Assembly: GCA_964199315.1 (NCBI GenBank)
Contig: OZ116699.1
Coordinates: forward strand, 33,542,001-33,606,000
From: Orbicella franksi
Taxonomy: Eukaryota
Length of the DNA: 64,000 nucleotides
Direction of reading: 5' to 3'
The first letter of the stretch is position 1. Every line of letters starts with the position of its first letter. Made by a program: the position numbers and the translations under genes. The notes beneath the pieces were generated by a model. That model searched no databases, was not told where the DNA came from, and saw nothing but the letters and a program-made list of their open reading frames with translations. This document shows, piece by piece, positions 1,599 to 57,108 of the stretch.

Positions 1599-1655
1599 CA
1601 AGTGGCGAGAATATATCAGAAACACGGCAATCGCCAAACTCTGTAAATTCGTTAT
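1599..1655 (-). pseudogene. Decayed signal-peptide exon of an LU/Ly6 paralog (duplicate of LU-1 exon 1)
   Basis: Aligns to 4629-4575, but ATG is replaced by ATA (ATAACGAATTTACAG vs ATGTCGAATTTACAG) and the exon is 57 nt rather than 55 nt, a frameshift. The GTAAGT donor is retained. Flanks ~525-2230 are homologous to ~4235-5230. Confidence 0.75.
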
Positions 1656-3168
1656 GTTTCTTCGTTTTTCCGCTTTACTAGTGGTTGCAGTCCGGAGCAG
1701 TATAGCTAAGTGCGGATCGGGACGATCAGAAGCGAACTGATCAACACAACTGAGCCTTACATACTATATGTGATGGCACACCTTAAAAATGTCAAAATTG
1801 ATTTATTTCGGAAGTGGGTTAACAATACTTGTCAGAAAAACTGTTGTCTCATTGGTCAACATAACAACCCTCCGGCTCTAATTTGTTCCCCCTCGCTTAA
1901 AATACTAGACCAAGTTTCAAAACTGCTATTTACATATTCAAGTTAGCTAGAATGTTTGTCTAACCATGATTAATTTAAACACGTGTTAATTCGGCTTCAG
2001 ATTGCTTCTTAATTTCAGCGATCTACAAATGGTTCAGCTTTCAGCTGCCACCCTTATTAATCATGATCAGGCGGGAACCTGAATGAGCGAAAATTTCATC
2101 CGTCGTTGTTTCTTTCATTCGTGCTTCGTTGCTTCGTTGGCTTTCATCAGACACACAATGACTTCACAGAAGCGATGAGTATGCAAATTTCTCATGCTGT
2201 CAAGATCAAGGTGCAATACATGACTACTTAGGGTTGCACGAGCACAACAGTGTAATAGTGTAATTAATCACTTTGTCGCATCGTTACTCGACAAAAACTC
2301 TATTGTTTAAATAGAAATCTCAAGCTCATAATAGTATTGTTAATTATAATATAGATAGGACTCTGCGGGCGTTCTGATTGGTCGAAAACCCATGTTTCAG
2401 AGTATAAAACATAGAAAAAGCCTGTTTTATTGTTTTTCGCCACATTCCCTCTATATCATAAAGCAAATGAAGAAGTCTAAGCCGCGTATTACACTGTGAT
2501 AAAACACCCGGACATAGGAGAACACTCGAGAAATGTGGAAAACACGAGCCGCAGGCGAGTGTTTTCTACATTTCCAGTATAATACATTTACAGTGTAATA
2601 CACGACTCAGGTTTCTTTATTTGTTAAATAAATTATCGTTGACGTCAAAATGTGGTAAGAACAAAAATGTGACGCACGACCGATTAGGCGAGTTTGTCAC
2701 TGATGTTCTTACCACTTTTTGACGTCATCTGGGATCTATAACTGAAAAAACGCACAGAAAAATGGAATCAACTTGTTTTATTTAAACGTTAACGACGTCA
2801 CCTATGCGTCTGTCCTCCAGTAGATCATAAGTAAGAACCAATCAAAATGCTCAAATGATTCCCTTATTACACAACTCTATTTCACAACTCTATTTCTCTC
2901 GATATTTTTTAAGAAACGTTACAAGCAACTGAAGATTTACCTATCACTGAAATTGAGCAACAATTATTGAATTTCTATTTAATGCTACATGCAGCTTTGA
3001 TCAACGAAGGTCAGAAATCCTTCAAATTTAAAACGACGCGTATGATTAATTTACTTAACATTCCTTAGCAGCTGCTAAACAATAAATCAACAACCTCGAA
3101 TGATTCGCATAATAACCGCGTTCTTCTAAATGACAATGAACGATAATCCATTATTACATAATTACAAC

Positions 3169-4629
3169 CTAATAACTGAACAAGTGGATAAAACCAGTGG
3201 CAACGCAAGCAATCAAAAGAAGACCGCTGACCATCTGACCGGGTGCACTGTTGCAGTAGTCTGAGGAGCAGCATTCCACGTTACACTTGACACCAGGCTC
3301 ATTGCAGGCGGGAACGGCTGATGCTGAGCAGGCAGCCGCGCAGCCTTTCACATAAGCTTCATCAATGGAACTGACGTGAACGCTGGCTTTAACGCAGTGC
3401 TGCGAATCTACGCACCTGCCCTTGTATCGCTTGGCATCACAGTCTTTCCAAGAGTGGGTGCTAAGGCACTGATAACATTCACGGGAAAACACTGCAAGAT
3501 TGAAGGAGAAGCGAGGTAAAATTATAAACGTGTGACTACCTTTTTCAAAATTTTCTAACCGTGAAAATAACGGGTGGAACTGACCGAATTTGTGTATGCA
3601 AGCAATCCAGAAAATAGCCATCAAGATTGTCTCCACATGTAAAATCTATGTAAAATCTTTCTGCACGCAACGGTGTTTTCGAAACCGGAAAATTTAGACT
3701 TCGCGGTATGTGTCAAGGGCAAGATGCTTCTGGAAAAACTTTTAAATGTTGTATAAAATAGCTAAATAGCAGGTTGAAATCCTCATCGGCTAATAGAGTA
3801 CTCAATAGTTAGACTTGAGCGATTTATAACAGTAGAAGTAAAGAGCTGGATTAGTTGGTGCAAGACATTTACTCTTCCGAAACAATCAGATTGCTACAAC
3901 TGCCAGAAAAAACGGTTACAGGGCAAGTAAAATAACTATATATGGAAATTGGACTTCGAGTTGCACTAACTGATAGTTTGAATACTTGCAACCGCGCTGG
4001 TGAATTTACTTTACTGTTATTCGATTACTTCAAGCGGTCTTCAGCTCATTCAACGTAGGTTGTTCATCTGAAATAATCTGTTTCAAACAAATTAAACAAC
4101 GTTTCGGCTCCTTGTCTAGTTTTGCTGCAGAATGCTTTGCTTTAGCAACTATGATTCTTCAAGCTGAGACTCAAACGTGCAATTCAGCATGGCTTATTTG
4201 CGACGTGGTATGTAACGCCCTCACATGGCATGATATTGAATGCTTCGATCCGTTTTGAAATATTTAGCACAGTTGACGTGTTGACCTGTGATAATGGATA
4301 GAGATCGATCGAGATGACGTACAAAAAGTGGTCTAACAAGACATCCAGTTGCAAACAAAAACTAAAATAGTGAACAGATTCAAAGTCTCCTCAAAGTTCT
4401 TGAATTGAGAACGAAGCTAAGGACACTCTAACTGAAACTAAAAGTGCCACGAGGTCTTGCCTGGTGATGATGCAAGACCACCGAGCGACTTGACATCCGA
4501 CTTGCACGAATTAAACATGTCTTTAGGTATTACGCATTTAGCAAATAAGAAATGTACCACGTAAGTTTACTTACCAAGTGGCGAGAACATTAGAAACACA
4601 ACAATCACCAAACTCTGTAAATTCGACAT
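3169..4629 (-). CDS. LU-1: GPI-anchored three-finger Ly6/uPAR protein, 125 aa (exons 4629-4575, 3491-3169)
   Basis: MSNLQSLVIVVFLMFSPL|VFS-RECYQC...KGCAAAC...ECCSSDYCN plus hydrophobic tail. Phase-1 GTAAGT donor and TTGCAG acceptor give a continuous frame. 12 Cys in the domain. Confidence 0.9.
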
Positions 4630-6327: not shown

Positions 6328-7800
6328 TTATGTACAGAAGAAAACTGCTGGAAGAAGCGTTGCCATGGAGATTAACATCATCATTTTGCTGTTCGCTATC
6401 TTCGGGCTCATGTTGCAGAGGTCAGCGGAGCAACAATACGTGTCACAGATGACATGTTCGTCACAATGGAGAATCCCGCTGGCATCGCATCTGTCGGCAC
6501 AGCCTCTTGCAAAGACTGAGCTGGAAATATTTTTTAAGACGTTTTGGGTCGTTATGTTCGCTTTGAAGCATCTCTTGAAACTTTCCCGGCAAGTGACTTC
6601 TTTAAGGTTCTCATCACAGCTTTTCCAAGAAGTTGAATTTTCACAATGGTAACATTCCAGGCCGTTCACTGCGTCAGGGAAAATATTCCAAAGGTAAAAT
6701 TGTATATCAGTATACCAGAAAATTGACTCGTTATGCGAGAAGAGAGACAGCTCTTACTTTTGTAATCCTAATCGTAATTCGAATTTCTCAGTCATCTGAT
6801 TCCGTTTCCCCTATGGGTCTCAAAACTTTCTTAAACTAAATATGTAATATGTATGATAGGTTTTGTTTCCAAAGGCAAATACAAAAATTAGCCGCTGTCG
6901 TTTGCGTTCTCCAAAATACACAGAACTTGGCCATTTCACGATGCTGTTTAAAGAGGAGGGCTAAGAAATATACAAAGATTTACAATGAACTGCACAGCCA
7001 TGTCGTTCTGCTCATTTCAAAACTTTTGTCTGGTGACGTTCTCGTTTCTTGCCGTCATGGTTGGCTTAAGCTGCAGCGAATATGAAATAAATTTAACATG
7101 AATATCGCTTTACTTACTCTTTTGAATGAAACTTTTTTTTTCTCCTCAGTTAAAGGAGCTCAGTCACGGTTTGCACATTTTGAAAAGTTTAGCCTAAATT
7201 TTTCAAATTCGTCGTTTACAATCCGTGTTAATCTTCGCCATCCTTGACCATCCTTGTTTCCTTTATGGTTTATTATTATCTCTTTGATGTTTTTCTATCT
7301 TAGTAAACTATTATTTTCAGGTTTCCTTCCATTTAAAGGAGATTTTGTACGCGGCCAAAAAAAAAGACGGAACACCGTGACGGAGCTCCTTAAAGCCAAT
7401 GAATTCCGAATGGCAATTATTATGTCAAACATAATCTTTAAAAAGCGAGCCAGTTTATGATTAATGCTGGACATAAAACAAGGAATAGTTATTTTTCAGC
7501 TACTTTAAGGTTTTTCTTTTTGTCTTCCTAAATTGAACTACAGTTTCCCTTCCTGTTAAAACTCACTTCATATATTTCAATTCACTGCACGCAGACAAGT
7601 TGTCCCACGTTTTCTTTGATTTCTATGAACAACGATGTCTAAAAGGTTTTCCGCGATTACGCGCTGTTTAAAAAGTGTCGCACGGAGAACTATGTTTGTT
7701 ATTGAGGTTTTTAAAGCAGGAGAATAAGACGTTGTACTATACCTGTTTGGATCATCTTAAAAACGCTAACCAAAATCCCGGCAAGAGTTAGATATTTCAT
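6328..7800 (-). CDS. LU-2: GPI-anchored three-finger Ly6/uPAR protein, 132 aa (exons 7800-7743, 6668-6328)
   Basis: MKYLTLAGILVSVFKMIQT|VNG-LECYHC...ARGCADRC...YCCSADLCN plus hydrophobic tail. Phase-1 CAG|GTATAG donor and GCAG acceptor. 12 Cys. Confidence 0.85.
7154..7389. mobile_element. Kolobok-like MITE in the LU-2 intron
   Basis: TTAA-AGGAGCTCAGTCACGG ... CCGTGACGGAGCTCC-TTAA; short TIRs with TTAA TSD. Confidence 0.7.
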
Positions 7801-7978
7801 GTCTGCCTTAATATTACTTATTCTAGTCGGGCTAAACATCAGTCATCGATGTGACGTATGAAGGCGAATTTTAACATAATTTGTTGGTGCTTTTCTTCAC
7901 CTGGCTTTGCATTGATTTAATCTTACCGGTGTTGCGCTGATTTCGAATCATGACATTGGACTAAAACAAAAAATTATA

Positions 7979-10362: not shown

Positions 10363-11036
10363 ATGGCTTTCCCTACCCGTGTAAAACGCTGTGTTATTTT
10401 CGCCATGCTAACTGCTTACATACTGCCTGAAGGTAGGTACTATAATGTACTTTATTGTTGCATATCAGCAAATCAGTTTTGGAGAAAAATGCGAATCACT
10501 AACCCACAAAACAATCGATACCAGCCACGAATTTACAAACGCGTTTGTGAAGAAAACACAACGTTACGGTTTTGAGGCTTATTTTATCTATGAAATTATG
10601 AAATTGACAGGTGCTCTGCTGGTCAAACTTCACTACTGGCTTGCGTCGCGTCGATAGCCGAGCTTTCAGGATTGAAAACTTTCATTCCATTAAATTTGTT
10701 TCTTTTAAGCCAAAATACCGCGTTACTGCGCAACTGCGTTCTCTTTGGTTCGTTCAATTCGCCGTCTAGGTTTCTTTCTAGTTTGTTTGTCGAGGTTCGA
10801 AAGGTTTCTTTTTCGTTTAAACGTTAAGATATGCCATATTTGATATGACACTTTTCAGTTTAAGACGGAGAAAAGTAAGACCGGCATTTGGGTGTTGACT
10901 GAAGAGATTCATACACTTTTAAAATCGAAATTCTTCTTCCATCTCCGCATATATGTTTCTTGTCCATCGTTTCATTTTTTTCTTGTCTTTCATTCTCTTT
11001 TACTACAAATTGACACCAAAATATCTAGCAATTCAT

Positions 11037-11072
<36 letters not shown>

Positions 11073-11969
11073 AAAGCACTTCTTGAAATCTCCAATTTTC
11101 ACGTTTCGACCCCCTCTCACCTGTTCATTGTTGTAACCACGTGACAGTGTCCACGGAGCGTATTTCAACATTGAAAAGGGGGAGAGGGGGGTTTGGCTAT
11201 CGACAAAAAGATGTTTTTTTTCAATTACGGAAGGACGCCAAAAGAAAGCGTTTGTTTTGCTCAAATGTGTCAACACTTTTGTCCATGATTGTAGCCATTT
11301 ATTTATGCACTGTTTGTTACTCCACGGCTTCCAATAAAGTAAACACAACTTACCTCATATCCCCCCTTGTCCATCGTTTCATTTTTTTTCTTGTCTTTCA
11401 TTCTCTTTTACTACAAATTGACACCAAAATATCTAGCAATTCATTTATTTATTTATTTATTTATTTATCTATTTATTTATTTATTTATTTAAAAAGCACT
11501 TCTTGAAAGAAAAAACTTAACGAAGCTGAGAGGTTACAGACAACTTTATTGTATATCCCTGATATCAAATTGTCTTCCTCTTACAGCCAGCAGTCTGCGT
11601 TGTAACAGGTGTCAGAGCCGTAAATCTTGGGAACACTGTAACGGAAACACAACAGAAACCAACTGCAACTTTACCGATGCAAGATGCGTAAAGTACAGCT
11701 ACGAAAAGATGGACGCGAACTCTGACGACAGAGAAACAATGTTTGCGCGCGGTTATCTGTCCCAATCCCAATGTTCCGGCAGTCTTCTCCCGGCATGTAA
11801 AGACCTACAAAAGTCTGGTGACAAAATGAAAGCAACTTGTAAAGTTTCGTGTTGCGGTGAAGATCTATGCAACTCACAAGTCAAGATAAACTCTTCGGTT
11901 TTGTTTTTGCTGGTGATGTTTCTTATTCATGCCATTTTTGTAAAAGTTTCGCTTCGAAGCGCGAAGTAA
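10363..11969 (+). CDS. LU-3: three-finger Ly6/uPAR protein, 150 aa, 11 Cys (exons 10363-10432, 11587-11969)
   Basis: MAFPTRVKRCVIFAMLTAYILPE|ASS-LRCNRC...ARGYLSQSQC...SCCGEDLCN plus hydrophobic tail. Phase-1 G|GTAGGT donor and TTACAG acceptor. Confidence 0.88.
10960..11507. repeat. ~130-bp direct repeat (with (TTAT)n) flanking a ~280-bp insert in the LU-3 intron
   Basis: ~10960-11088 is repeated at ~11366-11507. The insert ~11089-11365 nearly matches ~26225-26501. Confidence 0.85.
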
Positions 11970-41200: not shown

Positions 41201-42496
41201 GCTAAAATTGCGCTCAAATTTTAATTTACGAACCAAATGATCTACCTACCTAGCTCGGCAAGCCCCTTTAAAATCCCTACCGTAGACAAAACCAAGACGG
41301 AGTTTCGTAATTAAAGACATGTCAATAATTCATAGAAAAATATTGTCTTCATTGATCGCTTGGGAAGAATAGTTTAGAATGACAAAGCTTTAAACCCACA
41401 AGTGTGAAATTAGGGAACATTCTATATTTCCCACTTCACATTTATTTTATTACTTTGAATGTTTACTATTCAGTTTTCGTGCCTATCGACTTTGTGGCTT
41501 AAAATTTTAATTGTTATTTAATAGAAATCAGGAAATGTTCACAGTATGGAGAAGTCACGTTATGTCATAGGACAAAACTTAACCACGGTGTATCAAAACA
41601 TGTCGGTCAGCAGTTATAAACAGTCTTGAAGGTTTGCAGGACTTTGCATGACCCCACATCACATGTACATAGAATTCTGTCCAGTAAATACCAGTCAACT
41701 TAAACTATTTTTAAATTGTTATCCTTAAACATCAACATGCTTGATACCGGTACTCGGCAAGCCATAACAAAGCGTTGAACTCATTTGCACTTGCCGGCCA
41801 TGGCTCAGTAATTGTTTTTACTTAATTTTATTTTACTTAATGCAAAAGAGGAATGCGAGGGAACCTGTGAGTTTTCTTCCAATGGACGAACCGGAGGTGG
41901 CTATCAACTCAGTGTTAACCCAAAAGTGTCCGGAAAAAAATTGACTAATTTTCGTGGCATCAATTCGACTTCGTGACTGAAAATTTTGTTATTTAGTGTA
42001 ACAGAAATTACGAAAACCAATATATAATAAGGTGACGTCAACTAAGAAGATTAAATGGTCACAACCTAGAATCGTGTCTCAGTAAATTCACGACTTCCAA
42101 TATTCAGTTCTGGGAATTGTTTTCCTACAATAAAAACAAGCTAATACCGGTATTCGGCAAGCCTTAACAAAGTGTTTACTAACGAAGGTCTGGTTATAAT
42201 GAGTCGAGATTAATGGCACAGAGTTTAACTCAATGTCCGTTCCCATGGGCTGTTAGCTGCTGTTTTTAGCCTCGGCATTGAAGAACGCGAGAAAAGCAGA
42301 GAGCTCAGTTCTCTTCTGATTCTTTTTACGCCTTCATCAATCGAGGAATAATACCCGAAACAGAGGGCTGTGACTGTTTTCCCTTGCCACCCTTCCCTGG
42401 GTAAAGGCGCTTGCCGTATTTTGCATAGACATGCAAATTATTTGCCACCGCTTACCACAACGGCGACAGAAGCGGACGACATAGGTGCCTCAAAAT

Positions 42497-45230
42497 ATGA
42501 AGCGCTTTTTTGTCCTTTGGTGTCTAGTTATTATACCGGAATTTGGTGAGTACGTCTACGAAATGACCGAATTTTCTTTCAGAGTTTCTTCCAGAATCCG
42601 TAGTACCGTGTACCGTAATATTGCAGTTGATCAAATTGTCAGAAATTACGATCTTGTAGTACAGCTGATTTATTTTTATTGTTTTCATGTCTCGCTTGTG
42701 TGTGTTTAGTTGTTTCAAACCATGTCAGTCTTGTAGTCTTGGCTGTAAATCGTGGTTCTGAGTTCAGACATATTAACTTCATATATTTCTTTATTCCCTC
42801 AGTCGGTGAAAATACGGATTCAACCGAGCACAGACACAACATACGCTGCTTATTCAAATCTCTGTTTTGTTTGTACACATGTATTTAATACCGGTGTTTT
42901 TTAAAAAACGCCGCCGTTTATCGCTAGCACACTTCGTTTTGCATTTGATCTTGCTCTTTCGGGCTAGACAAAGATCAATGAAAGACCAAAATCAAATGAT
43001 TGCCCCGTTACAATGCACCAAGAACAGGTCCCTATAAAGTCAAAAGAAACTTTTGCCTAAGGGTTAGATGAGTCAGTCCAGCCTTTATTTTCTGCAGAAA
43101 AGGAAGACCTTTCATAACTTTGAAACGCTCTCAAAATCTGTCAAAAATGGACAGGAGGGCGTCCACACCACTGGAGGTTGGTTTTATTTGCGCAAACACA
43201 TTAAGATGCAGAAGTAGCGCCTCTCTGGTTAATTTACGTGTTATGGTGGGAAAACTTCCTACCAACATTTGTGCGCCTGCGAATGATGCTTAACTAATCT
43301 ACTTTAATTTAGTTAACCTTTGCGCTGGTGAAAACCAGCCTTGAGAAACCAACAAAACCTAAAAGCAATTGTCATTATTAATTTTAAATGCTGCATTTAC
43401 ATTTGTGCATTAGAGTGGCGACGAAAAGTGACTGGAGAGTATAATTTGCCGTGTAGTCCGTTTTTCTAGCGTGAGTAGTTGAATGTTTTGTTACGAGTGC
43501 ATGGGTTCGTAGTGTCGGGCCAAAGTCACGCGATCGCGGTGCGCATTAAGATTAAAACATCCATGTTCGTTCGCCGTAAATATTTTGCATTTTAAAAACA
43601 ATATTCAAGCGGATGTTTTCAAAACTTGAAGAAAACCTTTAAGCTATGATTATACATTTATAAGTGTAAAAATGTGCGAATCGTTTTAAATATGAACGGT
43701 TGCTAGGGCAATTAATTCAGTGGTATATTTTGCACTTTTAAGAAGGGCGATTGATCTCACCTGTCAGGCGATGACACTTCATTGCATCCGTGAAGCAATA
43801 CACTGCTCGCATGATGCTGCAATTTTTGAAATATCTTTGAAAAAGTTGTTTGAAATGTCCTCAAACATCGCCATAGCGAGTATAAAATTTTAATAGCTAT
43901 GTTCGCTTGTTGAATTCTTTCAGATGTCGACTTTCGAACATTCCAGCTGTGACTCAACATGACATACGCTCGCTCTAAGTACCTGCAATTTTAAACAAAT
44001 CGTGTCTGAAACCTGAAAACTGACAAAGGGCCAAGTTTTTACCGGCAACCTGGCAGCTGGCACTTTTATTTAGCCCTTCGTTAGAATATACCTCAACAGC
44101 TACAAAGCTTAGAAAAACTCTCAGAATCACTAAAGTTGCAGAACGCTTTGCCTCAATTCAAATTGCTTAAATTCTTCTTCTACTAACAAACAGCAGCGTT
44201 GGTTACTTTGTAACCTACATAATATTAACACATGATCGATAGCCAAATATGTTATCTCGCTCAAGCCACTTCCGTAACAGAAAGGCTCGAGACTTTTTTA
44301 AACTTTATTTCGTGTCAGTTCCCACGTTATACGTTTTTTAAGATATTTAAAAATACGTGTTCTTAAAAAAACTACATGTATCCTGAAAAGTTAGCATCAA
44401 TGATCCGTGTTAATCTAATTGCCGCATGGTCAAAGTCTGACTTTTTTTTATTCTACTCTTGGCCGTACGTCACTTTACCGTCACGTTTCATCTTTCCGAA
44501 AAATTAAAAGTGCAGAATAATTACCACCTGGGTGACTTACTGACGCAAAGCATTTATTTAGATGAACTGAACTGCAGAAATACTCCGTTTTGGGTGAGTA
44601 AGGTGTCCCTGAAAAGAGCTGGAACGACCGTGAAAATTTCAAGAGGGGTTGAGGGGAGGATTTTGCCAGCTTCGCGCTTCGCGCGTTAGATGCAGTCATC
44701 ACATCTTATGACAACCTCCGATATAGAGCGTATTCATTTGGCATCAGAATTCCGGAATATTGATACTACAAAGCTCCTTTTACTATGTAGTCTATACATA
44801 AGCTTTGGCGTTCATAAAGTGATGTAAAATTGTCAATCAAAGCTTGGTAAAGTAGACAAAGGACGTAGTTCAACTGAAAATGGCGGACGCATACTTTCAG
44901 TGTTTTCAGTTGAAGTTAAAGAAAACTGCAATGCTGAAATTTTGGCAATTTATTTCTTTTTCCCTATCGTAAAATCTATGAGTATTAATCATGAATTTCG
45001 CGCAAGTTAAGGAGAATGACTCTGGGTAGGACTCGAACCGGTGGAGTTAGAGTCTAGTAACATGCTACAGCCACTTGTTATTTTGGTCAAAACAGTCTGG
45101 AGGGCAGAGGTTTAACTCATTAATTTAATCAATTTAGTTTGGCTAATTCTTAATTCATATTGATCAGTTGAGAATTAGTAAAACTTGCAAATTTCAGCTG
45201 AGAAATGATGCGGGGCTTTTATTTATTAAT

Positions 45231-45261
<31 letters not shown>

Positions 45262-46718
45262 TATACTTATTTCTTTTTCTTTTTTGACTAATGGTTGAGA
45301 CTGAAGGGCTGAAACTTCATCTAATAGCGAAAAATTCGCCACAACTTTAAATTAAAAACTGAATTAAAACACTCCTATCCAGAACCTCTTTTCGACTGCG
45401 TCGTATCAGGATATTCAGGGATCGACTGGACAGTTGATGTTCGTTCCGGCGTGGGTGGTGAATTTGTGTTGAATAGACTTATGCAGAATAGCTAATTTTG
45501 TGTCCAAGTGTAAGCGTGATCGTGAGCAATTTCCCAAAGTAGTGCGACGATGAAAGGAACACCCACATAAAAACTGTGTGAGGATGGCAGAAGTTTGAGA
45601 AGAATTTCATCTCAAGGAGAATTGGAGCATAACTCCCATAAACATGGGAGGCAGCGTGGCCGAGTGGTTTAGGGCACTGGATTTGAAATCTGGAGGTCCT
45701 TGCTTCAAATCCTCCACCCTACCGCTATCTGGATTTGTTCACGGCAGCCCCGAGTTCAACTCCTCGACCGCGCTGTGTAAATAAACAACTGGTCAGCCTC
45801 CCACCAGTTGGGATTCTTAATAATTTGCGTTCTCTTTGCAATATTTGTTTGTTTAGTTACAGTGTCCTCAATTAGCACAACAGTGCCAATATTATTATTT
45901 TTTATCATTATTTTTATTATTATTTAGCTTCTTACGTAATCATACATAATGCCTGCTTGTTTAGTGCACGAACAATGGTCAAGTCTGCATTGCGTCAAGT
46001 GGTCCATACAGTCGGAGCTTACCCCGGTTTCCGTGGCATGAAGCGACTAGGAGTATTTCTACTCCCCCTGGATAGGATGCTAGTCAATAGCAGAGTTGTG
46101 CCCCTGCATTACAATCACCGATACCCAATTATACACCATTAGAGAGAGCCACTGTGAGAGCCAAGTGTCTCGCTCAAGACTGAATACAGTGCAGTGCCCC
46201 CGGCCAGGGCTCAAAACCCGCGAATTCGGGGCGCTAACAATTACATCCCCGCATTTTCCGCCCCCACACGAGTCAGTAAGGACTTCCATAAAATGCCCAG
46301 ACGTCACCACATAGAGTCTACCATTCTCTTAACACTAAGATTTTATCCTTTTTTCTCCCTTTCAGTGTGGTCTCTAGAGTGTTACCACTGTGTAGGCCCT
46401 GTTTCGAAATGTCAATCTGGCGGTGACAAATTAAAACTTCTGGAGTGTACTCCGACAAATGATCGATGCTATCACACAAAAGTCACGAAAATTGAAGCGG
46501 AAGACGAGTTGGATCAAGGCTGTACGAATGAAGAAGGCTGTGGTATAAAAACGAGAGCCTGCTCAAACAGCGGTGATTGCAAAGCTACTTGCTGCGAGAA
46601 AGATCAGTGCAACAGTGGAGTCAGCGCCAGCGGTATCGGAAACAGCGCATGGGCACGGATTTGTCTGCTCGTTGCTATTATCTTTGGAATTCGACTCCTG
46701 GTGCCAGGGAATTTGTAA
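42497..46718 (+). CDS. LU-6: GPI-anchored three-finger protein, 133 aa (exons 42497-42545, 46366-46718)
   Basis: MKRFFVLWCLVIIPEF|VWS-LECYHC...QGCTNEEGC...TCCEKDQCN plus hydrophobic tail. G|GTGAGT donor and polypyrimidine TTCAG acceptor. 12 Cys. Confidence 0.92.
45646..45885 (+). mobile_element. tRNA-derived SINE (second family) in the LU-6 intron
   Basis: GGCAGCGTGGCCGAGTGGTTTAGGGC head, TTCAAATCC B-box, non-tRNA body and AT-rich tail. Body fragment in reverse at ~27252-27288. Confidence 0.7.
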
Positions 46719-48743
46719 CAAAAGTATTTCAAGGTGGAAGCAGAAAATATCAGTTAGCATAACACTAGACATTCTACACGATGTTGACTGGGTGTAGAGA
46801 CTAAATTTGGATATGCAGTGTTTAACTTACACGTTCACAGATGCCTTTTACAGCACTGTTCCTAAGTCATCAGACAAAAAAATGTGTCTATAATCTAAGT
46901 ATAGTATACATTACGAAAAGGTAAAATTAAGAGGTATACTAATCACGGCAGGATTTCGAGTCAGATCCCGAGTTAGGATTTCGAGGAAGGTCTATTTTAT
47001 TTTTTATTTTGTTTATGTGAGGGAGTTGAAATGTGTAGCCATGCTTCCATGATATTCATGCAATTTTAAAACTATTCAGTGGTAAATGTATATAGCATTG
47101 CCAAAGCAAGCTAACTGTATGCAAAAAAATCACACTGATATAGCTGACCGGTTTTTCGTTTGGGAATCCTGACTCGAGATCCCGACTTGAAATCACTCCA
47201 ACTCGAAATCCTGACTCCGAGAATAAATTAATATCCTAAGAATCGATCAGAACTAACAAAAGGTTATATTATAACGTTTAACTTCAAAGCATTAAACTGA
47301 CAGCGCAGCTGCAATCAACCCACAACAGAGACCGTCTGATTATCGAAACTCTGATTACCATTAATCGACAATATCTAAAATAGAAAAATTAATTTGAAGT
47401 TGGTAAAGGTAAATGAACTGCAGCCGATTTTTTTTTCGACTCGCGCTTCGCGTTCGTGTATCGCGTTTCGCGCTCTGCCGCAAAACCAGCCGCCATAGCA
47501 AGTTTGTGAAACTCGAAACGGCAGTAAATTTATCTTTATCAACTTAAAGCTAAAAAAAATAACCGTTTCATAAAAAAAGAAATATTAATTTTGCTCGGCC
47601 ATAGAAACACCTGTGTATTTATACACTGTCGTTTACTTTTTTACATGTAATAATTTGAATCTTAAAATTAGTCTTTTAAGAAAATCGTTCACGCCAAAAC
47701 AATGAGGACTTCATACCGACGTAGGTTGTAAGTTAATGTAATCTAACGGCTGGAATAAAACTTTGGCTGTATTAAAAATGTAATGAGAAACGTGTGTACA
47801 TTTTGACTCTCTTACCTGGAGTAATAGTTTTTTTAAACAATTTTTTAACAATTTTCTAAATCACTAGACTAGGAAGTTGTAACTGATTTGTTTTGTTCGC
47901 CGACGCGTTTCGTCTAATTATCGTAGACCCCAAAACGTTTCAAGCTGAGTCAAGGTATTTTGAGTTATTTTGGCCAGGTCGGCTGAATTACCCTTGAATA
48001 GAAGGTAACCAGAAAATATTAGTTCACTAAGATAGAAAAACACCAAAGAGATGATGATGACAATAATAATAATAATAATAATAATAATAGAATATTAGAA
48101 TATTTTACAGATTCCCCTGTTACCTCATGAAAATCCAGGAGGTCCCATCAGGGGGTCTGAGTATCCATATCCCATCAATTTTTTCCCTAAATATTCCGTA
48201 CCATCAATTCCAGTTTTAAAAATCGACAACTCTCCTACTCGATAAAAGCGTGAGGAAACTTCTTAAGCCCTGACCGATCTCCTTCCTTACGTTATTATTT
48301 CATCGGCTTCAAGTATCAACGAATTCTTACAACTTATTTTAAAACAAAGGTATTTAAATCGCTAAGGAAAGTTGACAATTTTAGCTTTTAATTTAGAAAC
48401 AAACGAAAAATTCTAGATTTCAGTATCCACATTCTTGTCAACATATGCCGGGCCTGGTGTAAGTGTTATTATTGGTCATTAACGTTTCTCACTTGCCATA
48501 GGATTGTTTTAACAGCAACGCATTGGAGGACGGCAGCTGTGAAATAAAGAACGAAAACGATTTTTAACGACCCCCTATCGAGGTTCTTGTCCAGAGTTTC
48601 GTTCAGTCGATGCACCTGTTGGAAGTGGAAATCTCTTCTAGAATTTTCATTGTAAACAACTCGTCGAGACCATCAGAGGAACACATTCAACACGTCTGGT
48701 TTCATTTGACTGTGTTGTGAGAACGGGGATTTCACAGACAAGT

Positions 48744-50621
48744 ATGCCACGCATTCTTGCATCCTTATGTATAGTGCTGATATTTGCTAAAGGTATCAGT
48801 ATTTCCAGTTCTAGCTCATCTTTTCTCCGTTTCTTGAGCACTGTCACGATGTGCACAAGCTTGCACAAATTTGCGCATTTTTTTACTATTTTACATGAAA
48901 ATCATTGACTGAACATGTAAGCTTTAAATTAAATCTTAAACCGTAAATGATACAAGTATCTTGGATCAGTTCAGCCTGTTCTTAGACACGAGATGAAGTT
49001 TATTTGACCGAAACAAGCTCTCCCTAACAAACTTAACAAAGTTTAGATTTTTAATCCCGACAAAAGTATGATTTTAAATTGTAAGCTATCAGTGTCGAAA
49101 TATAATTCAGTCAGGAAAAAATAACCTATATCAGACTGTTGTGGTAAGCACGTAGTTTTACTGCTCTGTATGTTTACATCGTGCCAAAAAAGAAATATGC
49201 AATTAAATTTTGAGTGGCTCCATGTTTGAGCCAAGGTCTCTGAGGAAATTTCTGAGCGCATTTCATCTAATTCAGTTTTAATATCACTAATTATTCTGAG
49301 CCCGCGTACGGAGGCTAGTGGGATATCAGTGACTGGACGTCGTTTGCGTTAGGACTCGCGACTTCGGCACTGTGCGATTTAAGTTCCATCCAATGTAGTC
49401 TACTCTATGTAACTCCCTTATCCCTTTACCATCCGGTGAGGTTACATAACCGTATAAAACCCACTGGTATTGAATTTACAGAGTTATCAGGCATCAAATG
49501 TTTCGCATGTGAGCCAGGAGGTAACTGCCGAAAGGATATAAAAGAAAAGAAATGTCCCAAAGAGCCACTATTGATGGACAAATGTATGCTAATGATGGAT
49601 GATGAAAACGAACAGGTATTAATTATGTTGTTCTGTATTAATGTAAAATATCAATGTATGATTATAACTGTCATGTTAGCTCAAAGTAGCTTGTGAAAAG
49701 GCTCCGGCTGGAAGGGTCTGACCGCTGCAGAAAGAGCCGAGAAGGAACTGGGCTTGAGTGAAGTGAGCGGCCTGTTAAAAGGCTAAGCTTAAAGCTAGTT
49801 TTCACGCAGGCCACTCCGAACAGGTTGACAGCCAGTACCCGTGGAGTTGTACTCGGGTGGAGGACCTTGAACTCGGGACTACTGGCCTGTAAGGTTCTTT
49901 ATCGTTATTATCCAAGCTTGTATGCATTAATTTCCCAAAAACAAAATGACCCATCTTCAATGTCAGTTCAAAGTATTTGGAACCGAGTTTATCGAGGTGA
50001 TATCCCCGAGCTGGTCAGTGATTTCCTGAGTTCTACTCTCAGTGATTTTAAAGGGAGAAAAATCAGCGTCTGATGTAAATTCTTACTAGCTATTGCATTT
50101 GTCAGCACGAGCTCCACTACAAGTGAACCTCGTTTATTTCGAAGATGATTGGTGAGGCTACCGGAAACTTGTGTGGATGAGGATAATGCGAATTCTGAGA
50201 ATTAGATTGGCAGTTGTTTATGCAGGCTCTCAGACAGAAAATAACCCAGCAGTGGAATAGTCAGTTGTGTACTTGCTGCGACTGTAGCCTGCATAACAGG
50301 CGTGGTGGGGAGGGAAAGGAGGAGAAAGGCAGCTGGTGAGGTGGGGTACGGAAAAGTTTTCCCTTGTCCGTCGTGTTTTGCGCCTCCCCCTCTCCTTCCC
50401 CGTTTATTTCTGTAAATATTTTCTTTCAGATTGCAAGAGACTGCGCCAATAACATGATGTGTGAAACTGCAAGGAATAATTGCAAACAAGCCAAAGAGGC
50501 GAGGACTGGGGATTGTGATGTCACCTGTTGTTCAGATGACCTGTGTAATGCTGGCTCAACTTGGTCGCCATTACTCTGGCTTTCTGGGCTGTGTTTCATC
50601 GGTTATGAAGTGCTTTCGTAG
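48744..50621 (+). CDS. LU-7: GPI-anchored three-finger protein, 124 aa, three exons (48744-48792, 49482-49615, 50430-50621)
   Basis: MPRILASLCIVLIFAK|ELSG-IKCFAC...DKCMLMMDDENEQ|IARDCANNMMC...TCCSDDLCN plus tail. Phase-1 then phase-0 GT-AG introns. 12 Cys. Confidence 0.9.
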
Positions 50622-51191
50622 AACTTCATAGTCAGGACATTCGTAGCCAAACCCTGACAAGGATTACTGTATTGCACTGCAATTGAATCAGTAAGATAAA
50701 ATCGCACTGTCACGAGATTCCAGTACGTTCAGACAAGATTTATTGTGTTCCTTAATACGAGAAGCATGCATTAGATGGTGAGGTAACAAAGTACCTCTGG
50801 ATGATATCTATTTGTTGTAATTTCACGTATGCTGTTCATTTGTAGTTAAATCATTTTAACGTTCAGTCTGTAACACTCTATCAACAATAAAGACTTAAAA
50901 ACAGCTCGTATCCTTGCTTTCTTAGGCAGCACACTTTTCTCCCACGTTTCCTCTCTTTATCTACGGGAATAAATAAGCATCAGCAAATTAGGTGCCGAGA
51001 GAAGGAGGCCTGTGATGGACTAGCATCCTATTGGGGCGTGGGGGGAGGGGGCGGATATTCTCGAAGTCGTTTCATTCTCGAATGCTGATATAAATGGAGA
51101 ATTAATAAATAAGACCTCATCCGGGAATCATCTTAGGTGACCTGGAGACGACTTGACTAACTTATACACGGACAGAGCGACAACTTGCTAA

Positions 51192-54100
51192 CTATGATTG
51201 AAGTAATGCTTGTTTCCCACTTTCGCAATTCTTGCGTTTCCGTCTCGCTTCACTCGTCCGCGAGGAAAAAATAATGGCTAACACGATCGAAAAAAGGAAA
51301 GCCAAACTCCCGTGCGGGCTTGCCGTCGAGTGTGTTCCACCGTTACACAGGTGTCCATGGCAACATCCATATGAACATGATTCAGTAATGCTGCTTTGTT
51401 CATTACAATGAGAACCTGGTTTGGAACACTCGCTGCCCAAAGCGCAATCTTTTGCAAATATCTTGGTTGTGTTATTGGCTTGGTTGGAATTTTTTTCAGA
51501 GTCGTGCGTTTCTTCTTTGTTGAACGTAGCACAGTGTTCAAATCTGAATGGACATGTCTTTTCTACCTTGTGCGTGTTACAGTGGTCCCAAGAAATGGTA
51601 CTTTGACAAGAGAAGCATTTCGTCCCTGAAAGTTAGAGAAAAATATTTCGTAAACTCAAATAAATAGCCCCTTGCTAACCGAGCGTGAGGGCCCTACTGG
51701 GGAATATTAACTTGAGGTCTTGGCAGTACAGACCGAGCGTAGCGGGGTCCTTACAAATGCGACCAAGAGCAGTAACCCCCAGTATGGCTCGAGCAAGCTA
51801 CGACTAGTAAATAGTTTATTATATGGCACTCGAAAATAAAACAAATACACGACTTATGACAAGTTCTATGGAGACTGTCCGTATGGCAAAATCCTTCACA
51901 AGATCAATCAGAGCGCTCGGATTTACTTCAAGACTATCTTGTCATATAACAAATTCACATATTTTCTCGTTTGTCTTGCTTCCTCCAATAATGTAACTCC
52001 TCCACGTACCCAAGTATATAAATGGGTACCGGCGAACTTAATGCTGGGCCGGGCGGTAACTGTGCTATGTACTAGCCTCCCATCCAGGGGGAGTAGAAAT
52101 ACTTCTAGTCGCTTATGATACGGAAACCGGGATAAGCTCCGGCGGTATAGACCACTTGGCTCGAAGGAGACTTAATCATTACCAGTCTACACCACATGAT
52201 CACATGCTACACACAATTCTCTTGTTTAAGCTGTTGGTTATTGTTTATTTAGCAATGCCCTGAGTGACTTTACTGACCTGAGCAGTAACCCCAGCCCGAT
52301 CCGTTCACGCTTCCATCAAACTCAGACTTTGTCGCGCACCAGTAAAGACCTTCTGGATTATCCTCTGTAGCGGCACAGTTTTTGTACTCCTTTCCACGAT
52401 ACTTAAACGGAAAAATGCAGCAGTCTCCATCTGTAGTTTTTACAAAACACTGAGAATCTGTCACTGAGAAAAATTAAACAAAGAAAAACATTCCCTCAGA
52501 ATAAAAAAACACAGGAATGGAGATCACAGACCTCAGAGGTAGGGTGCTGTTTTTCACTTTGTTTATCTACAAATATCTCAATCCACTGATTAATTCTTTA
52601 CGAGGCATACTTATGTTAAAATCTGAACTAAATAGAGGAATAACACTCACATTTCACCTCTTGGATATTGTGCAGTTTCACGGTCTATAATCATGCATGA
52701 TTCCACACATTATCGAGCTAGCAGCAAAATATAAAGTTTATCCATGCATACTGCCACAAATTCTCCCGGGGGGGGGGTAATCCCCAAAGTTTTTTTGTGG
52801 GGGTGCGCAGTCCCGGCGAACCTTGAAACGAAACCTTCAGACCAAATACTTGATTTTTCACATCCTATTTTAGACCTGAGTGAAAAATCGATACCCCATT
52901 ACAGACCTCTAAAATTAATACACGGCTCTAATAGACAACCGCAGCTAACCAGAACTGGCTTCCATTTGTGTAAACATTTGAGAAGGGCGCACAAATATAT
53001 TTGCCAATGTTGATGCGGAGTTCATTGCCAACAAAATACCCGATGCAAAGCCAGCGAAACACATAGTTTGCTTAATTTTAGAAGAAAATGGTCAAAATCT
53101 ATTCCCTTTTTTCAGTCCAAGTAGAACAACAGCTAACAAACCACACCCCTTGGGACACCACTTACCTACATAGGCCATATAAGGGAGTACCCAACCGCCC
53201 CCCCCCCCCCTCCCCTTTCGGGAGAATTCTATAACCTAAACCAACTGATACCGTCACGCTTATTAGATTAATTTTATTGTAGCTTACATTTGCAATATCC
53301 CCAGCTGGTGGATACATTTCTACTGTATTTGAAGTCTTCTGTGGCGCACCAAAATCGATTATGGATATCACCGTGGTACGTACAACTCCTGTATCGTATT
53401 CCTTTATAATAGAACGGAAATCGACAGCAATGATTATCAACTGTTCTTTGGGTGCAAGCAGTGCTTTTCTCTCCTAGAATTGCTGAAAACACATAAAAAT
53501 AACTTCAATAAACTCAAAACTGCATGCCCAAAATTTTAACATCCCTACTGGTTCCCAGTACTTTCTCAGATAATGTTAACGCGCGCGTCGCGTGCAGGCG
53601 TGGATGTTTTCGTGTAGGCTGATTTGAAGATAATTTTGTACATAGTCTAACATGACGGAAACATTATTCAATGTATGTGTGCCATGATATATATAGCTTC
53701 TTTAAAGCGAAATGATCGACGGAGAAACTCTTTATTGGCTTTCTTCGACAGACGGCCATGGACCACCTGCCGTTGAATTAATTAATATTCAGCTTATTCA
53801 ACCAAGGACCGCCGTTTTAAATTTTAACTTTTATAACTAGTAGTAATCAGAGATTATGAGAGTGCGTTCGACGCTCTCACTTTAATATATCTATATATAC
53901 CGTAAATAAGTGATTTCACTAGCTGACTTTTAAACCTTTCAACCAAGGACCGCCGTTTTAAATTTCAACTTTTATAAAAACACTTATACGCCATCTCGCG
54001 GTGTGTTTTTGCGAAGATTAATCGCGTGAACGAATGCCAACCTTCTCTCAACGAGTTTATTCTACTGATCAACGTCAAGTAATAAGACCGAGTCAAATCT

Positions 54101-54650
54101 GTTTGACTTTTACAAATTTCAGTATCAAGTCCGAGTATATAATGGCGGATCAATCCCTAGTGATTTTGTTATCAAATTCATCGGGTTTTTTTAGACTATT
54201 TTGCATTAAAAAACAGGTAGCTAGCGATTCGATCATAGCTAGGTAAAAATACGTCATAACAGCCAAGAGTATTGTATTGCGACTTGAAATTATTCGACAA
54301 ATTTTTTTTTTTTTTACTTGCGCACATGTGGAAGGAAATTAATACTCTTCTAAAGGACTACATCATGTCTTAGACCCAAGAGGCTCAATCCTTGATTGTT
54401 CGAAGTCAAATACTTTGATCCTCTCATGTCCCTCCTAAACTTATTCATGTGTAAGAAAACCATGAAGACCTCATATATACGCATTGTTCAATATTACTAG
54501 ACAAAAGTGTAAAAATTTAAGTCAGAGGCGATACTATTACAAGTTAATCCAACAAGAATAGGGGAAGAATTGATCTCTCTGGACTCAACGCCTCTTACCT
54601 TTCAAAGAACAGCTCAAAAGAACGGCGAACAGGCAGATTCGATTCGACAT
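51192..54650 (-). CDS. LU-8: signal peptide, FN2, FN2, LU domain, hydrophobic segment and basic tail; 285 aa (exons 54650-54599, 53473-53288, 52463-52278, 51625-51192)
   Basis: MSNRICLFAVLLSCSLK|G; FN2-1 CCRFPFYYKGIRYRSCT..FWCAT..WGYC; FN2-2 CCIFPFKYRGKEYKNCA..YWCAT..WGYC; LU TKCFSC...AKDC...GCCHGHLCN (12 Cys). All three introns are phase 1 with GT-AG ends; total 858 nt = 286 codons. Confidence 0.88.
52765..53222. mobile_element. MITE with CCCGGGGGGGG termini in LU-8 intron 2
   Basis: CCCGGGGGGGGGGTAATCCC ... GGGAGTACCC..CCCC..CGGG; imperfect 8-bp TSD CAAATTCT/AGAATTCT. Termini resemble 21797-22176. Confidence 0.6.
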
Positions 54651-55249
54651 CGGCTCTAACTACTGTAGCCATCTGGCTATGTTGTGGTCAAACGATATGC
54701 ATGCTCCGATAATTCCTTCATGTAGTATATTTGTTCATAAATGTTTCATGTCACTCAAGCGGCATAACTTCTCCGACCCAACATAACAGGATGATATGTT
54801 ATGACAACTGGCGGTACAATAATTGACACACACTCGTTTATTCTGACATGATTTGCATTGCATTGTCAATTCACACCTGTGTGAGTTCAAGTGAATTGGA
54901 CCCATCGTCACTCGATCGCGACTGAGTGGTTTCCGGTTTGGATCACGAGGCAAAAGTTTGACTGGCTAAAAGCGGATTTTGCATGAGCAGTAAATTTAAA
55001 AAGACTCTCTTTTTTTTTTAAGGATAGCTAAGAATTTACGGCTTGGCAGCGTTTGATAAGAAATAGCTCCTGCGTTGAAATATCATGCTAATACTAATAA
55101 CAATAAAAAAAAACAGGAACTTGAATTGATGTCTGTCGATGTCTTGCAGGTTTCTAAGCAACTAACTGAACTAATTACTATGCAGAGGACAGACGTTTTA
55201 TAGAAAAAAAAAACAGCGTGAGTTTAAAAAATCTGCATAATATGCTCAA

Positions 55250-55431
55250 GAGTTTGTTCCTTTGGGGTGATCTGGATCGGGATCAGTGATCCAACATCAC
55301 TCGGATCATAGTTCATCAAGGAACCGATGAATCCGTGACCAGAGTAGATTCATCGGTTCCTTTGATGCACCATGATCCGAGTGATCTTGGATCACTGATC
55401 CTGATCCAGATCACCCCAAAGGAACATACCC
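55250..55431. repeat. ~180-bp near-perfect palindrome (MITE-like) between divergent LU-8 and LU-9
   Basis: GTTCCTTTGGGGTGATCTGGATC... / ...GATCCAGATCACCCCAAAGGAAC; arms about 80 bp. Confidence 0.85.
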
Positions 55432-55791
55432 ATAGACTGTCACGTTCAACAAATAAAGACAACAGAAAGAAATATGTTTCAGTCTTACTACCTTTTTATC
55501 TTGTTGACAGCGTAAAAATATGCAAATCTGAAATCTGAATCTGAATTCATAAATCAACTTTATAACGAAAAATCGAAAGCTTATTGAATCTTAACGACCG
55601 TCGAGTTTGCTAATTTTGTTGCTTCTTGCCGGGTAAAGCTATTGCTCATTCAGATTAGCTTTCCGTAAGTTGTCTGCAAATTAACTGTGTTTTGTTGAGT
55701 TAAACCATTTGCCCGCAGCGTCGTGTCCAAAATTTAAATTACAAAAAAGACGTTTTCGAAAACAATAAGGATTCGCGTAACTAGTAGCGAA

Positions 55792-57108
55792 ATGTGCCGA
55801 TACAGTTTTGGTGTGGTAATATTTCTCGCGGCTATTTTGCCTTTCTGTGAGTATATCAGAGTACAAAACTGTATTTCCGTGTTCTTGGTATATTTAATAA
55901 GCAAAACAGCTGCAAAATGTTGACAACTGATCATTGCTTCGGGATCTCGATAAACGTTATTTGAAAAAAACATATTTAGAAAACGCAACCTTGTCTGTTT
56001 TCTCCTCGTCGGCAAGCTTTTAACTTGTAGTCTAACACCAAGCTTTGCTTTCTTAGTACGTCATAGAGGGAAAGCGCTTTTATTTTTCCCAGTTAGGAAC
56101 GGAATTCAGTTTGCAGTCACTCCTCATTCGAGATCGAGAACCGATCGAAAATTAAACTACGCTTGACTTCTGTTGGGCCGTTTCTTCCAAACTATTTTTA
56201 GAGCCTAAAATCTGATAAGAAAAAGTACTCCACCTATTCACATAGATGTCAACGAGATCTCATTCATTTAAAGCTCTACTATATAGCCAGAACTCGGGTT
56301 TAAATTATTCGGCAAGATTCGGGTATGAAAAAGTTTTGAATTTGAAACCTGGCTAGTGGGGGAGTTTACACCGATAGAAAATTATGATATCATTGCAATT
56401 TTGCAATACCGATCTTTTATCGGCTAGTTCAGATATGGCAGATATATATATTGTATGGTATGATATATTGTTTGACTGACTGATTAAAAATGTGATTATT
56501 TGACTGCCTGAGTAACCCAGACTGACTGAATGACTGACCGACTGAGTGACTGACTGACTGAGTGACTGAGTGACTGAGTGACTGGCTGGCTGGTTGGCTG
56601 GTTGGCTAGCTGACTGACTGACCGAAGGACGGAGAAGCGGAGGCCAGACAAACAGATTGATCTGTGACAGACTACATATTTATTACCCAGACTGACTGAC
56701 TGAACGACTGCCGCAATTTTTCTATTGGCTTCAGGTTCTTCGCAGCTATGCTATTCCTGCCCGAAATCGGCATCCATGGAAAAATGCGACGCCCAAAGGA
56801 CACAATACAACTGTTCAATGATTGGCTCCTTTCACACCAAGTGCGCACGCTTCTGTGACTGGAAGAACGGCGTATATCATCGAGAATGTACCATGGATTT
56901 CAAGTGCGAGAGAATGCAGATGGAATGCGAGGAAAGAGTGGCAATGCAGGATCAGAAACAGAAAGAACTGGAATGCGAGTACAAGTGCTGTGAGGGAAAC
57001 CTATGCAATACTGACCCGTGTAACCTGGGGTCGAGCATTCGTCCACGATTGATGGGCATTGTGGGAATTGTCTTTGTCGTGTTAAATGTGATCACGTTCT
57101 GTTCGTAA
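55792..57108 (+). CDS. LU-9: three-finger protein, 142 aa, 14 Cys in the ectodomain (exons 55792-55846, 56735-57108)
   Basis: MCRYSFGVVIFLAAILPF|CSS-QLCYSC...TKCARFC...RECTMDFKC...KCCEGNLCNTDPCN plus hydrophobic tail. T|GTGAGT donor and TTCAG acceptor, phase 1. Confidence 0.88.
56470..56710. repeat. Degenerate (ACTG)n/(GCTG)n tetranucleotide array at the 3' end of the LU-9 intron
   Basis: Direct reading. Confidence 0.8.

Follow-up and report, generated by a model that had tools for sequence, protein, structure and literature searches.

A tandem array of nine Ly6/uPAR domain genes in the coral Orbicella franksi

A gap-free 64-kb stretch of the genome of the scleractinian coral Orbicella franksi (assembly GCA_964199315.1, contig OZ116699.1, positions 33,542,001 to 33,606,000; hereafter the window) contains nine genes with a Ly6/uPAR (LU) domain, LU1 to LU9, between positions 3169 and 57108, together with one relic exon at 1599-1655 on the minus strand. 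We conclude that the window very probably contains the core of an old array in which nine Ly6/uPAR paralogues stand in tandem; eight encode products with a glycosylphosphatidylinositol (GPI)-type C-terminus and one, LU8, is fused to fibronectin type II (FN2) domains. A preliminary description of this DNA, made from the sequence alone, had proposed nine LU genes and one relic in an early-branching animal. The count, the relic (its exon copy ends at 1599) and the animal host were borne out; the description of all nine as plain LU genes was not, for spliced RNA defines LU8 as an FN2-FN2-LU-transmembrane gene.

Nine loci with a common cysteine scaffold

A six-frame scan of the window for the LU end motif CC-x(2-7)-C-[ND] returned nine open reading frames (ORFs) with a hydrophobic tail. 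Four lay on the minus strand (LU1, 3172-3645; LU2, 6331-6753; LU5, 35443-35787; LU8, 51195-51632) and three on the plus strand (LU3, 11493-11966; LU6, 46158-46715; LU9, 56704-57105), and the other two, also on the plus strand, belonged to genes with further exons (LU4, 28129-28467 with an upstream exon at 27336; LU7, 49482-49615 and 50430-50618). A hidden Markov model (HMM) built from the nine genes was applied, with every filter disabled, to all stop-to-stop segments in the six frames of the window. It scored only the nine loci (11 exon pieces), at E-values between 1e-34 and 4e-07; the best remaining segment had an E-value of 0.46, indicating that the window lacks a tenth LU exon and that the count of nine is exact. 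Such a number of LU genes is far beyond chance. Seven of the LU domains are single ORFs of 86-174 aa, and the earlier statement that most of these genes are invisible to ORF calling was overstated, although it holds for the signal exons.

The scaffold present at all nine loci comprises 12 cysteines, opens with (L)xCxxC, closes with CCxxxxCN and has the spacing C-2-C-5/8-C-8/15-C-5/9-C-14/28-C-3/5-C-6/7-C-5/10-C-3-CC-4-C. Exceptions were found in intact relatives of LU4, which have eight cysteines plus a four-cysteine extension, and in LU9, which has 13 cysteines in the domain and one in the tail. Each gene has a phase-1 intron before the first cysteine, with a pyrimidine-rich AG acceptor that leaves two bases of the split codon, and a signal exon (ATG, hydrophobic stretch, phase-1 GT donor) was predicted 0.7-3.8 kb upstream of every LU exon. 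Joining of a separate signal exon in phase 1 was confirmed by RNA for LU6 and LU8, and the signal-exon models of LU1, LU2, LU3, LU4, LU5, LU7 and LU9 were matched by full-length orthologous proteins; annotated proteins of the coral Oculina patagonica align from residue 1 of all of these models except LU4. The proposal of a shared scaffold and phase-1 signal exon with little else in common was upheld in both its parts, pairwise identity among the paralogues being 20-33%.

Apart from LU8, the products measure 124-150 aa, and heuristic inspection of their tails found 11-23 uncharged residues at or near the end of all eight. From this tail shape, eight of the nine products are predicted to carry a GPI-type hydrophobic C-terminus. 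A hydrophobic tail had been described for the whole set; all nine do carry one, but that of LU8 is a membrane span followed by a charged tail. Isoelectric points (pI) include 4.3 for LU5 and 4.7 for LU7 and reach 7.6 at most; the acidic end of the charge range proposed earlier stands, and its basic end does not, with no strongly basic member among the nine.

Family membership and fold

Pfam matches were judged against gathering scores of 24.8 (UPAR_LY6), 33.9 (CD59), 21.2 (Toxin_TOLIP) and 22.2 bits (fn2). LU1 (29.4 bits) and LU2 (35.9 bits) exceeded the UPAR_LY6 threshold. LU2 also passed Toxin_TOLIP (26.7 bits), on which LU1 (19.9 bits) and LU5 (12.3 bits, E-value 0.3, its only Pfam match) were sub-threshold. 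The CD59 model scored LU6 at 33.6 bits, 0.3 below its gathering score, protein P0011 at 31.2 bits and P0063, the Oculina orthologue of LU5, at 26.2 bits; every CD59 score was below threshold. LU3, LU7 and LU8 were sub-threshold on the Pfam LU profiles, with weak Activin_recp matches for LU3 and LU7, and LU4 and LU9 had no match.

An LU profile threshold was passed by an orthologue of LU3 (P0052) and a relative of LU8 (P0084). Alignment with hhalign to the Pfam-positive LU2 orthogroup gave a probability of 93% for the LU5 group and 84% (E-value 8e-06) for the LU9 group, and a search of the nine-gene profile against the PDB matched LU-fold chains only, with LYPD3/C4.4A first (2e-06), BMPR1A second and SLURP1, PSCA, LYPD6/6B, CD59 and CD177 among the further chains. 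Because of these passing orthologues, hhalign results and PDB matches, the genes without a Pfam pass of their own were assigned to the LU family. An AlphaFold2 model of LU5 (pLDDT 82.3, pTM 0.70) was compared with known structures: the top 50 Foldseek matches in the PDB were uPAR, Lynx, CD59 or toxins, all three-finger proteins with probabilities of 0.99-1.00. Among Swiss-Prot models the best was LYPD1, with Drosophila cold (Q9VPR7) fourth and uPAR domain 3 and Ly6H also matched; the top AFDB matches were three-finger proteins, and look-alikes in the ESM Atlas were cnidarian and other LU clusters. As judged from sequence and profile comparisons, the nine genes belong to the Ly6/uPAR three-finger family, and for LU5 the predicted structure has the three-finger fold.

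LU8 joins two FN2 domains to an LU domain and a membrane span

LU8 (51192..54650, minus strand) has an 864-nt ORF encoding 288 aa, assembled from a signal exon (54650..54599), two FN2 exons (53482..53288 and 52463..52278) and a last exon (51625..51192) that encodes the LU domain, the transmembrane span and a cytoplasmic tail; the 3′ untranslated region (UTR) reaches approximately 50727. RNA contigs and raw reads, from two to three of the runs X1, X5 and X24, contain the joints 54599|53482, 53288|~52463 and 52278|51625, which correspond to GT..AG introns on the minus strand. The FN2 exons match Pfam fn2 at 45.8 and 40.3 bits, well over the gathering score, and RNA joins them to the LU exon. At the C-terminus a 17-residue span precedes 22 charged or polar residues, and for this reason LU8 is assigned as a transmembrane rather than a GPI-type protein.

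The architecture is kept outside Orbicella. Oculina has a 278-aa fn2 gene at the position equivalent to LU8, and a library-wide search found fn2 with a C-terminal LU match in further proteins (P0084, with two fn2 domains and UPAR_LY6 at 31 bits, P0087 and P0086), such that FN2-LU occurs in Oculina and at least three further protein clusters. The literature search found no description of an architecture combining FN2 with Ly6, and the fusion is the least expected element of the array.

Within the LU8 introns, at 51900-52300 and 53700-54100, RNA contig depth rises to approximately 6000 with loose ends on both sides. The 51.9-52.3 kb stretch is a dispersed repeat of approximately 105 nt, whose copies are 85-87% identical; a first look gave more than 2000 candidates in the genome, on all chromosomes, and no Rfam or tRNA match was found. 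The high depth at 51.9-52.3 and 53.7-54.1 kb was rejected as a measure of LU8 expression; its source is other transcripts, the first stretch being the dispersed repeat.

Transcription of the array

RNA was checked for LU5, LU6, LU7 and LU8. LU8 was spliced in three runs of different studies. For LU6, two Logan transcripts (L001 and L002, from SRR6255862 and SRR6255844) that are 99.1% identical to the window join 42545 to 46366. For the LU5 terminal exon with its flank (35000-35771), 84-95% of the sequence words were present in four polyA RNA runs and 41-57% in runs from three other studies. Carry-over of genomic DNA is unlikely to explain the LU5 signal, because X1, one of the four polyA runs, left intergenic parts of 48.7-54.7 kb uncovered. 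Transcription was thus observed for LU5, LU6 and LU8, and splicing for LU6 and LU8. The preliminary description would have been undermined by silence of most copies; three of the nine are transcribed, and LU7 was not detected. Logan contig L003 was rejected as evidence of LU3 splicing, as its alignment to the genome continues unbroken through the acceptor.

An old core with turnover at one edge

In Oculina patagonica, positions 40.206-40.314 Mb of CM126636.1 hold, in order, LU9(-), LU8(+), LU7(-), LU6(-), LU7(-), LU6(-), LU5(+), LU3(-), LU2(+) and three copies of LU1(+). This is the order and relative orientation of the window, reversed, with positional counterparts for eight of the nine genes; the extra copies are accounted for by a 14-kb duplication of LU6-LU7 and at least three LU1 genes. 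In Desmophyllum pertusum LU3, LU2 and LU1 are adjacent, the neighbouring tags OS493_003573 and OS493_003574 being an LU3 orthologue and a fused LU2+LU1 model. A maximum-likelihood tree placed each window gene in its own clade with proteins of other species, with long branches between the clades. Between the window and Oculina, gene-wide dN/dS was 0.17-0.43 by the NG86 method and 0.21-0.59 by maximum likelihood (ML), with dS of 0.35-1.0. The low identity among paralogues reflects old rather than fast divergence, in view of the positional orthologues, the per-gene clades and the dN/dS of 0.17-0.43, and these comparisons indicate that the core array is old and under overall purifying selection.

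The Oculina duplication (CM126636.1 40,220,311-40,240,130, loci L008 and L009) is in tandem, with identical LU7 copies and LU6 copies. An RVT_1 element lies inside the range of the LU7 gene there, and across the region runs a 668-aa trypsin/Nudel gene model; no trypsin gene was seen in the window. On the right, the array edge is marked by the gene flanking LU9, whose exons at 59325-62030(-) have 75-89% protein identity to the Oculina neighbour, the model of which contains SAM_1/SAM_2. One of these exons, 60596-60922, gave a weak PLAC8 match (20.4 bits, gathering score 34.4).

Turnover is visible to the left. The relic (1599..1920, minus strand) is a decayed copy of the upstream region and signal exon of LU1: it aligns to 4540-4900(-), the LU1 upstream region and exon 1, at 84% column identity, and in its exon copy (1655..1599) the ATG has become ATA and 2 nt are inserted, with the donor GTAAGT retained. 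The relic is not followed by an LU exon, either within the window, as judged by the HMM, or over the 29 kb beyond its left end. A large, near-perfect palindrome at 950-1548 (206-nt arms at 99%, 187 nt between them) lies immediately downstream of the relic exon and resembles an insertion of the MITE type. Left of the window, at distances of 29-140 kb, are seven further LU exons (C2:33,402,835-33,513,232, loci L011-L017; C2 is the contig of the window). Three of these copies are LU1-like (58-74% identity) and two, L014 and L017, are LU2-like (76%), with open ORFs in which one or three scaffold cysteines are lost; L012 is an ORF with two LU domains. Across the 497-Mb assembly, the nine-gene profile found at least 113 LU exon matches, which are exon matches and not gene counts, with arrays on C2 (30.7-39.4 Mb), C4 (9.5-10.0 Mb), C5, C6 and C11. 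In this genome the LU family has many members, most of them in tandem arrays.

These observations bear on the birth-and-death surface-recognition locus put forward in the preliminary description, taken here as a fast one for immunity or for recognition of symbionts, self or gametes, with quick turnover of copies and diversifying loops. The low paralogue identity, the left-hand copies of LU1 and LU2 type, some without their full cysteines, the orphan exon, the lineage-specific duplicates in Oculina and the abundance of LU exons in several arrays would all be expected of such a locus. However, a fast-turnover locus would not be expected to retain eight of nine positional orthologues in conserved order and orientation, per-gene clades shared with other species or gene-wide dN/dS well below 1, and we regard this explanation as unlikely. 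The part of the proposal that survives is local: the core array appears stable, with turnover mainly in LU1/LU2 and, in Oculina, the LU6-LU7 duplication. One-to-one conserved orthologues of known function under strong purifying selection had been named as grounds for abandoning the idea; the orthologues exist, but selection is moderate and their function is not known.

Gene models, variants and surrounding elements

LU1 (3169..4629, minus strand; 125 aa) consists of a signal exon at 4629..4575 and an LU and tail exon at 3491..3169, and its model matches Oculina proteins P0022-P0026 from residue 1 at 61-66% identity. LU2 (6328..7800, minus strand; 132 aa; signal exon 7800..7743, LU and tail exon 6668..6328) has a full-length match at 76% in Oculina ACROYT_G007844 (P0004). 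Between LU2 and LU3, the segment 8015-9115(-) is rich in GC (0.48) and represents part of the reverse transcriptase of a non-LTR retrotransposon (RVT_1, 32.9 bits).

LU3 (10363..11969, plus strand; 149 aa; signal exon 10363-10432, LU and tail exon 11587-11969) has orthologues P0047-P0058, including Oculina G007843, and its tail closes with the conserved polar octapeptide KVSLRSAK. Codon 11754-11756, at a scaffold cysteine position, is TAT (Tyr) in the window. It is TGT (Cys) in the older Orbicella faveolata assembly (GCA_002042975.1) and in a Logan contig, and all retrieved orthologues that cover the position have cysteine. Exact-sequence look-ups of the LU3 exon ORF found neither the Tyr nor the Cys version on record and are uninformative on allele frequency.

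LU4 (23640..28470, plus strand) was modelled with a signal exon at 23640-23688, exon 2 at 27336-27499 and exon 3 at 28247-28470. Its intact relative P0044 (O. faveolata LOC110054223, 145 aa) comprises an eight-cysteine LU domain, a four-cysteine extension, a stalk and a hydrophobic tail, and is identical to LU4 in the signal exon, at the beginning of exon 2 and in the C-terminal tail. A splice at 27445|28129 was rejected, as alignment to the orthologues P0044 and P0043 supports 27499|28247. Compared with the older O. faveolata assembly, the window lacks one base of the T-run at 27433-27435, which breaks the frame; LU4 departs from the frame of P0044/P0043 after ...PSQPN. Over approximately 16 kb, the window aligns with O. 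faveolata scaffold MZGG01001432.1 at identities of 98.2-99.7%, and of 99.6-99.7% in the two longest blocks. The LU4 frameshift and the LU3 Cys-to-Tyr change may be alleles or assembly errors, and constitute two possible null or hypomorphic changes.

LU5 (35440..38184, minus strand; 125 aa) has its signal exon at 38184..38139 and its LU and tail exon at 35771..35440. LU6 (42217..47794, plus strand) encodes 133 aa, or 137 from an upstream in-frame ATG; exon 1 begins at or before 42217 and ends at 42545, the coding part of exon 2 is 46366-46718 and the 3′UTR extends to at least 47794. LU7 (48744..50621, plus strand; 124 aa; exons 48744-48792, 49482-49615 and 50430-50621) has an LU domain interrupted by a phase-0 intron and a full-length match at 73% in Oculina LOC144641630 (P0059). 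LU9 (55792..57108, plus strand; 142 aa; signal exon 55792-55846, LU and tail exon 56735-57108) is matched over its full length at 74% by Oculina ACROYT_G007830 (P0021). Reading frames are open in eight of the nine genes, and splice sites are intact.

Rfam and tRNA scans of the window were both empty. A repeat of approximately 280 nt (96-97% identical) occurs in the first introns of LU3 (11087-11368) and LU4 (26223-26505), and 13108-13866 is a near-perfect palindrome with 255-nt arms at 97% and outer arms of 116 nt. A DIRS-like retrotransposon occupies 15927-20022(-), with inverted repeats at 15437-15522 and 15615-15700 and frames of 386 aa (a family we could not name), 728 aa (RVT_1 and RNase H) and 408 aa (Phage_integrase, a tyrosine recombinase); the segment around it, 14612-23521, corresponds in the older O. 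faveolata assembly to a gap of 100 N.

Proposed function and alternatives

By analogy with LU proteins elsewhere, the products of the array would be located at the outer leaflet of the plasma membrane. Eight of the proteins have a predicted cleavable signal peptide, one LU domain and a hydrophobic C-terminus predicted to be replaced by a GPI anchor. The three variable loops may bind other surface or extracellular proteins, each old paralogue with its own partner. Modulation of receptors, nAChRs among them, is a further candidate role. LU8 has gained two FN2 exons and with them a putative binding module of the collagen/extracellular matrix type, and the array appears to grow and decay slowly at its LU1/LU2 edge.

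Several points weigh against this account of an old, GPI-type surface array. GPI anchoring is predicted from the shape of the C-terminus alone, and the LU3 tail could be a membrane span rather than a GPI signal. For LU7, no RNA joints were found, and only trace unspliced coverage appeared in X1, X5 and X24, the three of four runs that gave reads there. The AlphaFold2 model of LU9, from a 10-sequence alignment, failed (pLDDT 39) and was not used. An LU4 counterpart in Oculina was not identified by tblastn in the retrieved pieces, where a 148-aa gene at the expected place was partly covered. Gene-wide dN/dS below 1 is compatible with positive selection at loop sites, and the putative partner binding is proposed by analogy.

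A more specific possibility is that some of the proteins, LU5 and LU6 especially, protect the cell in the manner of CD59 by blocking own or foreign pore formers of the MACPF/complement type at the cell surface. CD59 is the best Pfam model for LU6 and for the Oculina orthologue of LU5, and CD59 chains are among the structural and profile matches. Yet none of the CD59 scores reached the curated threshold, and the LU5 model fits uPAR, Lynx2/LYPD1 and toxins at least as well, which leaves this role improbable.

Similarly, the acidic LU5, and LU7 with it, could act in biomineralisation, at the interface of tissue and skeleton or in the skeletal organic matrix. LU5, which is transcribed in adult colonies, has 21 acidic residues in 81 (21 D+E, 10 K+R), and its model matches residues 51-142 of the Acropora millepora 'Threonine-rich protein' B3EWZ7, which we take to be a skeletal matrix protein. 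Moreover, the coral LU protein Pdcyst-rich has been localised to the calicoblastic ectoderm (PMC2728513). The acidity of LU5 is nevertheless moderate compared with known acidic matrix proteins, its Oculina orthologue P0063 is less acidic in places, and a literature search for coral LU proteins in the skeletal matrix gave nothing specific; we give this role only a slim chance. A broader conjecture, which we offer as a long shot, is that the nine old paralogues are a constant set of coral surface co-receptors that divide the tasks among them, in which LU5 would work at the calicoblast-skeleton interface and LU8 would be a transmembrane receptor linking matrix/collagen binding to a three-finger module, both roles being new to the LU family.

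It is very unlikely that the array is largely dead, with most copies pseudogenes. The LU4 frameshift and the lost LU3 cysteine in the present assembly, the relic exon and the failure to see LU7 in RNA would fit such decay, but the open frames and intact splice sites, the low dN/dS, the transcription of three genes with splicing of two, and the intact LU3 and LU4 of the older O. faveolata assembly argue otherwise. Least probable of all is that the genes encode secreted three-finger toxins or venom components: the fold is common to elapid toxins and Toxin_TOLIP matches LU2 above and LU1 below threshold, but each of the nine retains either a hydrophobic anchor signal at its C-terminus or a membrane span, secreted forms were not observed and one-to-one orthologues are under purifying selection.

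Comparison with known systems

Tandem Ly6 clusters are standard in vertebrates. The vertebrate clusters (Ly6E/H, PSCA, LYNX1, LYPD1, CD59) resemble the coral array in being composed of tandem small genes with a signal peptide, one LU domain and a GPI-type tail, and in sharing the phase-1 intron after the signal exon, the CCxxxxCN end and the three-finger fold, with LYPD1 the best Swiss-Prot structural match to LU5. They differ in that the coral scaffold has 12 cysteines and the vertebrate domain usually 8-10, that the whole LU domain lies on one exon in seven of the nine coral genes, and that one coral member has FN2 domains and a membrane span; the assignment is at the level of family and not of orthology. 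Among invertebrates, the Drosophila Ly6 proteins coiled/cold, boudin and quiver are likewise GPI-anchored, with cold the fourth-best structural match to LU5, and the QVR Pfam model gave a sub-threshold 24.6 bits for the Oculina LU5 orthologue. Our literature search found nothing specific on Ly6 proteins in cnidarian septate junctions, and no cnidarian test of septate-junction or ion-channel roles. The ectodomains of TGF-beta/BMP receptors (Activin_recp) share the fold superfamily, BMPR1A being the second PDB match of the nine-gene profile, but the coral proteins lack a kinase domain, score sub-threshold on Activin_recp and have a GPI-type or short tail. In contrast to snake-type toxins, which are secreted proteins of 60-75 aa with no anchor, all nine coral genes encode a hydrophobic C-terminal extension or span.

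Closer to the present case, a 2026 survey in Acta Naturae reports LU proteins in every animal phylum, 563 of them in 13 of 13 cnidarian genomes (mean 43 per genome), with functions not known, and describes the cnidarian proteins as having a signal peptide and a GPI or transmembrane anchor (PMC13719153). The accessible part of that survey does not mention tandem arrays, corals or FN2-LU. The count of LU exon matches given above for the present genome, at least 113, is well above its mean of 43 proteins, with the qualification that exon matches are not gene counts. In corals, Pdcyst-rich of Pocillopora damicornis, cloned in 2009, is a 147-aa protein with a signal peptide, a uPAR/Ly6/CD59 domain, the motif CCXXDXCN and a predicted GPI anchor, localised as noted above and responsive to heat (PMC2728513); its likeness to the window genes is at the domain level, and its localisation and heat response are not transferable to them. 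A 2026 preprint of a Stylophora atlas also lists a Ly6h-like gene as heat-induced in alga-hosting cells.

With the array, one conserved Ly6/uPAR cluster of a threatened reef builder is mapped gene by gene, and LU5 (acidic, expressed), LU6 (CD59-like, expressed) and LU8 (FN2 fusion, expressed) stand out as the priority members for expression and binding work. Knowledge of the LU family itself is unchanged by it: LU proteins are already published in cnidarians and in corals, and the array is a well-documented new instance of a known family.

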